DNA of 64,000 nt, taken from contig CM074819.1 in the NCBI GenBank assembly GCA_037447605.1, positions 496,001 through 560,000 of the forward strand, given 5' to 3'. The position numbers and the translations under genes were made by a program. How positions within the stretch are numbered: the stretch's first letter is position 1; every line of letters begins with the position of its first letter. The notes under the pieces were generated by a model, which was not told the origin of the DNA, ran no database searches, and saw only the letters and a program-made list of their open reading frames with translations. Below, piece after piece: positions 27,953 through 47,027 of the stretch. Source of the DNA: Zygnema circumcarinatum SAG 698-1b (taxonomy: Eukaryota; Plantae; Zygnematophyceae).

Positions 27953-30756
27953 TCACTCTCTCCTCTCGTACTGCCCAAAGAAACTATTCACATGTGACGC
28001 CTCAATTTCACCGTAATTGAACGGAATGTCTGCAAAATCCGTAATTCTCAAACTGTCGCCTCCCCCGAGAAGCGCTAAAGGGTCGAAATTCGACCCATTG
28101 TCCGACCTAAAATTAGGGCAAATGATAGAGCTATTCTTTGATCCTAGAATAGAAAACTCGTCTGAATTACTAGTAGGGCAATTTCCGCTAGAGCTGGACT
28201 GTACGGAAGAAGGGACATGCATGTACGGCAGCCATGGCTGCTCCATCTCCGAAACCCGAACTGAGCCTTCCTGAGCCTCTGAGAGAGGGGAGAGAGAGGA
28301 GAGAGGGGCGACGGAAGAGGGAGGAGAGTGGGGGGAGAGCGAGGAGCGAGGACAGAGAGGAGACTGGGAGGAGAGAGAGGAGAGAGGGGAGAGAGAGGAG
28401 AGAGTGGAGAAATTGAGGAGAGAGAGAGGGAAGGGAGAGGTTTCAGTAGCCATAACAAGCACGCTCAAGGCTTCCAAGTTGCTGGAATCCATGAACTCCT
28501 CTACCTCCTCCGAATTCTGCACTCCCCCTCTCTCCCTCTCTGCTCCCTCTCCCTCCCTTTCCTCCATAACCTGTGGCTGAGACATCCTCTGTATCCATGC
28601 TGAAGACTCAACGGAATTCAGTTCTGTTCCATAACTGTGCTCCGTCGCACATAAATCCCTGTTGGGAGCTTCCAGAACCTCTGAAATTGAAGTGTCTAAC
28701 TCCGAAATTTGGCCCTCTCTCACAGTCAACCCTCCTCTCTCTCCCTCCAAAAGGGAACTTGAAGGAGAAGGTAAGCTTCCTTCTTGATATCCATGTCTTC
28801 CGTGGCTAAAGGGAACAATACTCCCCATCGAAAAATCGGCCACTTGGGAGCTTCCTCCAGTCGGCATAGATTCCATAGGCTTCAAATTCCCAAAAGCCCC
28901 ATTTCCCATATGGGGTTCAGGGACCTGCATTGTACGGATATGTAGAGAGGGTCCGTACGGGTGTACGGATGTTGGATGTTGATGTTGGTTTTGAGGGGGG
29001 TTAGAAAAAGCGAAACCCTGATTTGGGTTTTGCAGAGCCACTGCAGCTGCTTGACTAAGGAGAAGCTTTGTGGGTCTTTTTGAGGAAAGGAGGGGAAATA
29101 TGAGCTGGTGATTGTGCTTTTCCGGATACTGAATGTGAAGCTTGAGGGGCGCATCTTTGTGGAATTCCACAGTGCGTTTTCCGGGACACTTGGCCTCCTT
29201 GAAGAGACTGCACTTGTAGTAGTATCTGGAAAAGGAAAGGGGGGAAAGAAGAGAGAGGAGAGGAGGGAGAAGGGGGCAGACAGAGAGTGGAAGAGAGAGA
29301 GAGAGAGAGAGAGAGAGAGAGAGAGAGAGAGAGAGAGAGAGAGAGGGGGAGAGGCAGATGGAAATACGGGGGTAGTGTGAGAATAAGGGGGAGGATAAAG
29401 GGTCTCGCTCACTCGCTCGCTTCGTAATTCTCTCTGCCCTCCCTCGTCCCTCCCTCTCTCCATCCCTTCCTCCGTCGCTCCGTCCGTACGTCCGTATTTC
29501 CCTCCCTTCCCCCTCATCCCCCCACCTCGCCCATCTCCCCCCCCCCCTACCACTTTCCCTGCCCTTCCTACCTCTCCGTCCCTTCCACCCTCCCTCACCT
29601 ACTCCCTCCCTCCCCCTCTTCCATCGTTCTCCCTCCCTCCCTACCCTAACTAGTAATCCCTCCCTCCATCCCTCCCCTCCATCCCTCCTTTCCCTCCCTC
29701 CCCTCCCTCCCTCCCTCCCTCCCTCTCTTCTATCGTTCTCCCTCCCTCCCTACCCTAACTAGTAATCCCTCCCTCCATCCCTCCCTCCATCCCTCCCTCC
29801 CTTCCTCCCTCCCTCCCTCCCTCCCTCCCTCCCCTCTTCCATCGTTCTCCCTCCCTCCCTACCCTAACTAGTAATCCCTCCCTCCATCCCTCCCCTCCAT
29901 CCCTCCCTCCCTTCCTCCCTCCCTCCTTCCCTCCCTCCCTCACCTGATGATGGAGGTCCCCTTGATGTGCTTTTGTCCGTACTTCTGCCAAAGGCACCCA
30001 TCGTTCGGAATGTCCAGTCGCCGCCTCGCCCTCCTTCTGCTTCCACACCATTACACAAACAAATAATACTTCAGTTCTCTAACACATATGTGTGTGTGTG
30101 TGTGTGTGTGTGTGTTATATCGTTCTACTTCAGCCAGTTTCATAAACAAAACTTAACACAACACTAGACTCAAACCCTACAACCCCTACAAATCCTAAAC
30201 CCTTCCAACCCACGGAACCATTCAACTCCTTCACTTCTTCTTCTCCAAGAAAGGTAGCAACCCTAAAACACCAATTTGCTCAACGCCTTGTCTCTCCTCT
30301 CACTCCGCTCTCTCCTCTCTCCTCTTTCTTCACTCTCCTCTCTCACCTCTCTCCCCTCTCTGTCCTCTCTCTCCTCCCTCTCCTCTCTCACCACTCTCCT
30401 CTCTCCTCTCTATCCTCTCGCCTCTCTCGCCTCCCTCACATCTCTCCCCTCTTCCCTTTCTCCCCTCTCTCTCCTTTCTCTCCTCTCTCCTCTCTCTCCT
30501 CTCGTCTCTCTCCCGTCGCTCCCCTCTCTCCCCACTCTCCCCTCTCTCTCCTCTCTCTCCTCTCCCTCTCCCTCTCCCTCTCCCTCTCTCCTCACCTTTT
30601 CGGAGCGGCTCCATGCAGCTCCTTCGCTGCCTCCTCTTCCGTTTTCTCCGTTCCGTCGCTCTCCACGCTGTCCCCTCCGCTCGTTTCGTCCAGTTCTACG
30701 GATTCCGGCTGTGCGCCGACCTGCCCGATGTGCTCCGTTGGGCTGTCCGCCTCCAT
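27953..30756 (-). CDS. WRKY: Atypical WRKY transcription factor A (WQKYGQK; C-X7-C-X23-H-X-H)
   Basis: Exons 30756-30596, 30036-29944, 29225-27953 with phase-2 introns. Domain: LDIPNDGCLWQKYGQKHIKGTSIIR|YYYKCSLFKEAKCPGKRTVEFHKDAPLKLHIQYPEKHNH. The intron lies in the Arg codon as in R-type WRKY introns. Confidence 0.92.
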
Positions 30757-45069: not shown

Positions 45070-47027
45070 ATGGAGCCGGCGGACTATTTGGAGCCGTTGG
45101 AGCTGACGGACATTCAGGTCGAATTCGATGAATTTTGGCGACACATGGACGGAAGGAACGGAACTGAAACGGAACTGGTCGAGGCCATGGAAACGGACGA
45201 GAAGGGCGGGGAAAGCGGCGGGACTTCGAGCCGCGAGAGCGGCGGAACGACTCACAGCGGAGAGGAGGAGGAGGGCCACTCAATACCCAAAAAGTGAGTG
45301 ACCATTATTTAAGAAGAATTTTTAATTTACATTTTTTTTTTTTTTTCGGTGTAGGACAAGGTTCAAGAAAGATATTTTTTATTGATTGTTTTTTTTTTGT
45401 GTAATGGTGTGGAAGCAGAAGGAGAGCGAGGCGACGTCTGGACATTCCGAACGATGGGTGCCTTTGGCAGAAGTACGGACAAAAGCACATCAAGGGGACC
45501 TCCATCATCAGGTGAGGGAGGGAGGGAGGGAGGGATAGCTACTTAGGGACGGAGGGAGGGAGGGGGGGGGAGGGAGAGAGGGAGGGAGGGAGGGAGGGGA
45601 GGGAGGGAGGGAGGGGAGGGATGGAGGGGAGGGATGGAGGAAGGGAGATTGGGAGGGAAAAAGAGAGAGACAGCGAGCGAAATTGAGAGAGAGAGAGAAG
45701 AGAAAAAGAAAAGAGACCGTGTTCTGACTCTTTCTTTCACTCCTTCCCTCTCTGCAGATACTACTACAAGTGCAGCCTATTTAAGGAGGCAAAGTGCCCT
45801 GGAAAACGGACCGTTGAATACGACACAGAGAACCCGCAGAAGCTTCACATTCGATACCCTGAGGGTCACTCCCACCCCTTAGCACCTCCCAATGCCTCCA
45901 AAAAGGTCGCGAGAATGATCCTCTCTCAAGCAGGCCAGACCTCCCTCCGCCCTACCTCTCCCTCTACCTCTCCCTCCCACTCTCTCTCACCTTCTCGCTC
46001 CCGTCCCCCTCCTCCTTCCTCCCTCCCCTCTCCCACTACCCCCTCGGGCTGCTCTCATCAGCACTCCCACAATGCTCCGCTTCAGACGGTTGCCGAATTG
46101 GGTCCTTCAAAAACTGGTTTTTTGGAGCAAACCCATTTGAGGCCTCAAGTTTTTAACGCGGCGAAACCTCTTCCGAAGGTAGAACCCTACGAAAATCTCC
46201 GAGAAACTGCCCAAACGATGGAAAAAACCGAGTTTTTGGGGTCCAACTCAGTTTTTAGGGCTGTGAGAGAGGAGGCACAATCTGCCGCCATGGGTTCGAC
46301 TATGAGCTCTCTCCCATCCAGCAATGGCTGCAATAATAGGTTCACAAAGAGTCGGAGCTTTCCAGAATCTTCGATCTCCGAGATGGGTCCATCCAACGGT
46401 CGAAAACCAAGCGGTTTGGATGCGGAGTTTGACACTTTAGCATGGGTGAGGGAGCAGCTTGAAGTTCCGGAGACTCCCAGATCCACATTTTCTGACACAG
46501 CTGCGGATCCACTTACTAGAATTGACCCAGTTCAACGTTCTCTGGAGAGATCAAGATCCACCGGACTCTTCCCCGAAACGATGACTTCTGGAAATTTTGG
46601 AACAAGGGGAATGACGGATTCGAACCGCCTGTCTCAAGCAGCTATAGAAGCCTTGAGAATTCTCGCCATGTCAACATCAAATGCAGCGAATTCTCCCTAC
46701 AATCTCACTCCTCTCTCTACCCTCTCCTCTCTTTCCACTCTCTCCTCACTCTCCGCTCTCTCCTCCTCTCTCTCCACTCTCTCCGCTCTCTCCGCTCTCT
46801 CGTCCATCTCCTCCCTCTCTACCTCCAGGAGAAGCTATTATGCTGAGCCTCCCACTTCCCAGCCATGGCTGCCATACATGCAAGCTTCCAATACTGCAAG
46901 GGGGGAAGCCATGAATATGAGCTCTGAGATCAACCCTTTGGCTCTTCTTGGGGGAGGAGACTCCTTGACAGTTGCCGACTTTGTAGATATTCCTCTCAAC
47001 TTCTTCAACTATAGGCCTTCACAGTGA
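45070..47027 (+). CDS. WRKY: Atypical WRKY transcription factor C (WQKYGQK; C-X7-C-X23-H-X-H)
   Basis: Exons 45070-45293, 45419-45511, 45758-47027 with phase-2 introns. Domain: WQKYGQKHIKGTSIIR|YYYKCSLFKEAKCPGKRTVEYDTENPQKLHIRYPEGHSH. Confidence 0.92.

Follow-up and report, generated by a model that had tools for sequence, protein, structure and literature searches.

What causes three diverged WRKY-type genes to carry one and the same stretch of nucleotides, silent positions included? We have investigated this question in a window of 64 kilobases (kb) from Zygnema circumcarinatum SAG 698-1b (positions 496,001 to 560,000 of the forward strand of contig CM074819.1, assembly GCA_037447605.1; all positions given here are those of the window), in which three genes, A, B and C, share a common plan of three exons and GT-AG introns (Table 1). 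In each gene exon 2 is 93 nucleotides (nt) long and has phase 2 at both ends, and its last 74 nt, the core (CTGGACATT...CATCATCAG), encode the DNA-contacting strand of the WRKY domain, all 24 residues of which are invariant among the three proteins. An exact string search located the core at 29944-30017 (-), 39556-39629 (+) and 45438-45511 (+), as reported in the initial annotation of this DNA, and the donor that follows it, GTGAGGGAG, is likewise the same in every copy, including both copies of gene B written in the assembly. Identity extends into intron 2, to a total of 90-96 nt, and its cause is probably recent short-tract interlocus (ectopic) gene conversion among tandem paralogues.

The distinction between the core and its surroundings is observed at silent sites. 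Over the 24 codons of the core (14.7 synonymous sites), the number of synonymous differences per site (pS) is 0 for every pair of genes, compared with 0.19-0.55 in the first six codons of exon 2, 0.61-0.92 in 41 zinc-finger codons and 0.5-0.96 in the C-terminal motifs. The many third-position differences initially noted in the zinc-finger codons were therefore borne out, and the similar synonymous divergence across exons that had been raised as a counter-possibility was not found. When only degenerate codons with a residue conserved in all three genes are counted, the three genes use the same codon at 23 of 23 positions within the core and at 39 of 109 (36%) elsewhere (Fisher p = 2e-9; pairwise p values 5e-8 to 2e-6). 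For the zinc finger and the start of exon 2 the corresponding value is 11 of 33 (33%), a rate at which 23 shared codons in a row have a probability of 1e-11. Several of the codons used in the core are minority codons of these genes (CTG 18/155, CCG 21/141, ACC 17/86, ATC 10/34). GC content at third codon positions is 0.79 in the core (n = 24) and 0.51-0.53 in exon 3, a difference that is weakly compatible with GC-biased conversion.

The edges of the identical stretch do not coincide with those of the exon. Exon 2 had been described as wholly identical and 74 nt long; the remaining 19 nt at its start hold five variable sites among A, B and C. Exact identity starts at CTG in comparisons of A with B and C and 3 nt earlier between B and C, and it extends into the (GGGA)n sequence of intron 2 by 16 nt where A is one of the pair and by no fewer than 19 nt between B and C, the part of the gene C tract shared with A being 45438-45527. 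Of the exon-limited conversion proposed initially, conversion stands as the best-supported cause, whereas the limitation to the exon does not, as the tract begins only after 19 nt of exon 2 and extends into intron 2. Upstream, the intron sequence reported to be common to A and C is real and comprises 23 nt of intron 1 together with 6 nt of exon 2, or 29 nt in all; gene B is unrelated to A and C across this acceptor. Within intron 2, the non-repetitive motif GGGATWRCTASTTAGGG is common to A and C only and occurs nowhere else in the 64 kb, the corresponding stretch of gene B lying hidden in an assembly gap. Two properties of an interlocus conversion tract were thus observed: silent-site identity confined to a bounded stretch with exact edges, and identity of non-coding positions, in intron 2 for all three genes and in intron 1 for A and C.

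Affinities among the three genes also change along the neighbouring sequence. In exon 1 the closer pair is B and C, in codons 1-20 of exon 3 A and C are 85% identical as opposed to 77% for B and C, and in codons 21-41 of exon 3 the order is reversed, with 86% for B and C as opposed to 60% for A and C. A switch of affinity within exon 3 as large as this was reached in 22 of 5000 breakpoint permutations, in a comparison of three sequences to which uneven constraint may contribute. This mosaic would support conversion without proving it. The 85% similarity detected by BLAST between intron 2 of A and of C was dropped as evidence, as unrelated (GGGA)n runs score equally high.

Conversion is favoured because it accounts for silent and intron identity, sharp edges that cross an exon boundary, a length of approximately 100 nt and a neighbouring mosaic. 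In the proposed mechanism, strong constraint on the protein would have made this stretch diverge less than any other part of the genes and hence left it as a homology patch usable for repair, between copies 5.8 to 15.4 kb apart and with A inverted relative to B and C. The converted segment would comprise the 74-nt core of exon 2 together with 16-19 nt, or more, at the start of intron 2, and perfect identity, once established, would favour further exchange. More speculatively, the adjoining (GGGA)n run, which is of the G-quadruplex type, could supply breaks or stalled forks. A more far-reaching version, in which (GGGA)n is a hot spot that recurrently spreads the WQKYGQK strand through the cluster, so that DNA specificity is kept or changed in concert, or in which the 74 nt have a shared function in the transcripts, is rather unlikely.

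Several observations weigh against conversion as the cause. Beyond 16-19 nt the intron similarity is no better than that between unrelated (GGGA)n runs, and the 3' edge of the tract is unplaceable. Three differences between A and C lie between the two stretches in which these genes are identical, implying patchy repair or more than one event. The change of affinity in exon 3 could stem from uneven protein-level constraint on A, synonymous sites alone giving a trend. The choice between conversion and constraint on the nucleotides rests on evidence from within the window, and the assembly is demonstrably unreliable at the junction of exon 2 and (GGGA)n in gene B.

This last point leads to the alternative that survives best, although it too is unlikely, namely that real differences within the core were lost from the assembly through bubble popping, gap filling or polishing with reads from a paralogue. 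Gaps were examined before other tests, and all of those written as 10 N sit in microsatellites or homopolymers. Two of them (31181-31190 and 31730-31739) affect no exon, being located over 420 nt upstream of the gene A ATG. Gene B is affected directly: its written order is 5' half, 5' half, 3' half, 3' half, an order that no simple duplication yields, and the gaps at 38413-38422 and 40942-40951 are separators of redundant contigs. The two 5' halves are 99.84% identical (37189-38402 against 38423-39638) and differ solely by a GG indel within a (GAG)n run; the 3' halves are 100% identical (39649-40941 against 40952-42244). Judged from this arrangement, the doubling stems either from redundancy introduced by the assembler or from a very recent duplicate that was mis-scaffolded. 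Because the 5' half is written twice, a fourth exact copy of the core is present at 38320-38393 (+); both this copy and the doubling of gene B were missed when three copies were initially claimed.

The indel (38138 against 39372-39373) leaves the (GAG)n run of the first written copy 2 nt shorter and alters the reading frame. Exon 1 of the second copy, at 209 nt, is in phase 2 as in A and C, whereas the 207 nt version is out of phase and is either frameshifted or needs an acceptor 4 nt downstream; the indel probably arose through faulty sequencing or assembly of one copy. A third gap (39639-39648) interrupts intron 2 of gene B 9 nt after the donor, so that the link between exons 2 and 3 of this gene is taken from the ungapped genes A and C. 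The contigs end 9 and 19 nt past exon 2, and the doubling of gene B shows that the assembler was in difficulty at exactly the exon 2/(GGGA)n junction. A second duplicate pair, 50131-50564 and 51790-52231, is 97.3% identical, ends exactly at a 10-N gap (52232-52241) and is probably a further redundant contig, as in gene B.

These defects speak for an artefact, but collapse or cross-polishing requires sequences that are nearly identical from the outset, and reads from flanks at 60-85% identity would not cross-map. In addition, each locus keeps private variants 1-19 nt upstream of the core, and no gap interrupts A or C between exons 2 and 3. At most, the assembler could have erased a few differences, which would leave the biological conclusion unchanged, as the pattern itself is not one that an artefact could create.

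A constraint at the nucleotide level, in which the 74 nt were frozen by selection on RNA or DNA as a small-RNA target, an exonic splicing signal or a structured element, is quite improbable as the cause. In its favour, the tract coincides with the coding portion of the domain that is conserved best, and the donor next to it is followed by G-runs that are potentially active in splicing. However, a small-RNA site or splicing enhancer occupies approximately 6-24 nt, and even a target of 21-24 nt could not account for the 23 consecutive synonymous positions frozen here; moreover, identity runs on into intron 2 and, for A and C, is also present in the upstream intron. Folding did not distinguish the RNA from its shuffles, with z = 0.18 for exon 2 with the donor and -0.26 for the core. 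No Rfam family was detected on the core at a permissive threshold, the only matches in the region being sub-threshold ones to AG/CT low complexity, and the window holds no other direct or complementary match to the core of at least 13 nt. The shared small-RNA target or splicing element suggested initially is thus unsupported. Chance, or purifying selection on the protein combined with codon preference, can practically be dismissed: all core residues are indeed invariant, but equally invariant zinc-finger and C-terminal residues share their codon far less often, and the core does not use the preferred codons.

Table 1. Coordinates of the WRKY-type genes, the written copies of gene B and the tracts of identity
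Feature	Position	Strand	Details
Gene A exon 1	30596-30756	-	161 nt; ATG at 30756; donor AG/GTGAGG
Gene A exon 2	29944-30036	-	93 nt; basic stretch RRARRR plus LDIPNDGCLWQKYGQKHIKGTSII; core 29944-30017
Gene A intron 2	29226-29943	-	begins GTGAGGGAGGGAGGGA; (GGGA)n-rich; without assembly gap
Gene A exon 3	27953-29225	-	zinc finger, low-complexity tail; stop TGA at 27953-27955
Gene B exons (second written copies)	39184-39392, 39537-39629, 41066-42305	+	stop TAA
Gene B 5' half, first written copy	37189-38412	+	exon 1' 37950-38156; exon 2' 38301-38393; ends in (GGGA)n at gap
Gene B 5' half, second written copy	38423-39638	+	10-N gaps on both sides; exon 1 39184-39392; exon 2 39537-39629; core 39556-39629
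Gene B 3' half, first written copy	39649-40941	+	end of intron 2; exon 3' from 39763, cut by gap at 40942
Gene B 3' half, second written copy	40952-42305	+	end of intron 2; complete exon 3 41066-42305 (stop TAA)
Gene C exon 1	45070-45293	+	224 nt; phase 2; donor AA/GTGAGT
Gene C exon 2	45419-45511	+	93 nt; core 45438-45511
Gene C exon 3	45758-47027	+	zinc finger, tail, C-terminal motifs, stop TGA
Identity tract, A with C and with B copy 1	29928-30017	-	74 nt exon + 16 nt intron 2 = 90 nt
Identity tract, C with B copy 1	45435-45530	+	3 + 74 + 19 = 96 nt; ended only by the gap in B
A/C identity across intron 1 acceptor	30031-30059 and 45396-45424	- (first interval)	29 nt = 23 intron + 6 exon

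The gene models are consistent with the architecture of the WRKY domain (PF03106). Searches were run exon by exon, and the two halves of the domain are recognised separately by Pfam, each slightly above the curated cut-off. Exon 2 alone corresponds to profile positions 1-18 with 23.8 bits (cut-off 21; E = 5e-5 for gene C) and encodes a WRKYGQK-type strand, its heptapeptide being the variant WQKYGQK. Exon 3 of A, B and C corresponds to positions 23-59 with 21.1-23.1 bits (E = 2e-4 for gene A), which identifies the zinc-finger half, and the translations of all three genes display the finger pattern C-X7-C-X23-H-X-H. The splice model is supported because exons 2 and 3 align colinearly with residues 62-91 and 94-133, two residues apart, of an intron-free distant relative (P0002). 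Outside the domain the A, B and C proteins are only 39-46% identical; the three genes are paralogues of long standing, arranged in tandem, from an algal WRKY clade.

Intron 2 is positioned as in known plant genes. The R-type WRKY intron of groups I-C, IIc, IId, IIe and III splits an Arg codon approximately five residues before the first Cys (PMC5018666). In A, B and C, intron 2 splits an Arg codon in phase 2, as AG/A in A and C or AG/G in B, followed by YYYKC, and therefore conforms to this definition, with the split five residues ahead of the first finger Cys. The genes described here resemble plant WRKY factors with R-type introns in this intron site and in that both halves of the domain pass the Pfam cut-off. 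They differ in that the heptapeptide is WQKYGQK and not WRKYGQK, the finger spacing is group-III-like (C-X7-C-X23) and ends in H-X-H, and both the long Ser/Leu/Pro-rich tail and the C-terminal DPLALLGGGDSLR recur only in a few algal-type proteins (P0001 and P0002).

This C-terminus is found in each of the three proteins, which end in PWLPY and DPLALLGGGDSLRxxDF (28013-28240, 42144-42254 and 46860-47024), exon 3 of gene A closing with PWLPY and DPLALLGGGDSLR. DPLALLGGGDSLRxxDF recurs at the C-terminus of the distant relatives P0001 and P0002, and looks like an uncharacterised motif of this algal WRKY clade. The nearest relatives detected are Logan-derived proteins with a WNKYGQK or WLKYGQK strand and a C-terminal DPLxxLGGxDSLR motif. 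A word-index protein search with gene C exon 3, either whole or as residues 1-60, gave no match, and a full HMMER search of 1.84 billion representatives with a profile built from the translated exon 3 of A, B and C returned five weak matches and no orthologue. Two back-translated degenerate patterns of the heptapeptide region had no match in JGI metagenome contigs. Within the window, no further WRKY copies were detected by tblastn, and the open reading frames between genes A and B gave no Pfam match.

Other repeats and motifs are present near the three genes. In intron 2 of gene A, the donor of exon 2 is immediately followed by 3.1 copies of a 109-bp unit that are 93% identical (29602-29941). 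The motif GGGATTACTAGTTAGGG is present in every unit and, as a single copy, in intron 2 of gene C. The same intron holds a 53-unit AG/CT run just upstream of its acceptor (29250-29353), and very long dinucleotide runs, (AG)195 at 42315-42701 and (CT)72 at 47037-47182, begin no more than approximately 10 nt from the gene B and gene C stop codons. Six TTGACC W-box cores are located within 350 nt (36248-36593), approximately 1.4 kb upstream of the gene B ATG that is written first; across the window W-boxes are not enriched, with 40 found and 67 expected. A 140-nt inverted dispersed repeat with 86% identity (26135-26274 and 34065-34200) flanks the neighbourhood of gene A and may be a small transposon remnant. 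Further away, an AT-richer stretch of approximately 2 kb (6835-8947) is internally repetitive, with many offset self-matches at 72-87% identity.

Interlocus conversion of a similar kind has been described in other tandem genes. Both the tract length and the mosaic divergence observed here match accounts of conversion in tandem paralogues (PMC3749932, PMC2720389, bioRxiv 10.1101/2025.10.29.685298). The HMA4 triplicate of Arabidopsis halleri (PMC3749932; bioRxiv 10.1101/2025.10.29.685298) likewise consists of tandem copies with sharply bounded homogeneity inside diverged genes, and long-lasting conversion in mammalian gene pairs (PMC2720389) appears comparable, being interlocus and accompanied by mosaic divergence. 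The likeness lies in identity over synonymous and intron positions and in a tract of approximately 100 nt. Unlike in those cases, the synonymous background is saturated in the algal genes, the tract is very short and falls on the one protein-constrained segment, and partner A is inverted. No publication describing conversion restricted to the WRKY strand emerged from our literature search, and WQKYGQK was found only in lists of land-plant variants. The WRKY tract adds one more case to an established process, here within draft sequence that shows evident assembly redundancy.

For this alga, the gene B models in the assembly are compromised by the doubled halves and by the 2-nt difference that alters the frame of one copy. 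For the WRKY family, the converted stretch would mislead domain-based trees or duplication dates for these algal genes. None of these consequences would surprise specialists in gene-family evolution. Three factors carry exactly the same DNA-contacting strand, and the locus would provide a small, clean case in which constraint on the protein leaves a homologous patch available for conversion despite saturated silent sites.

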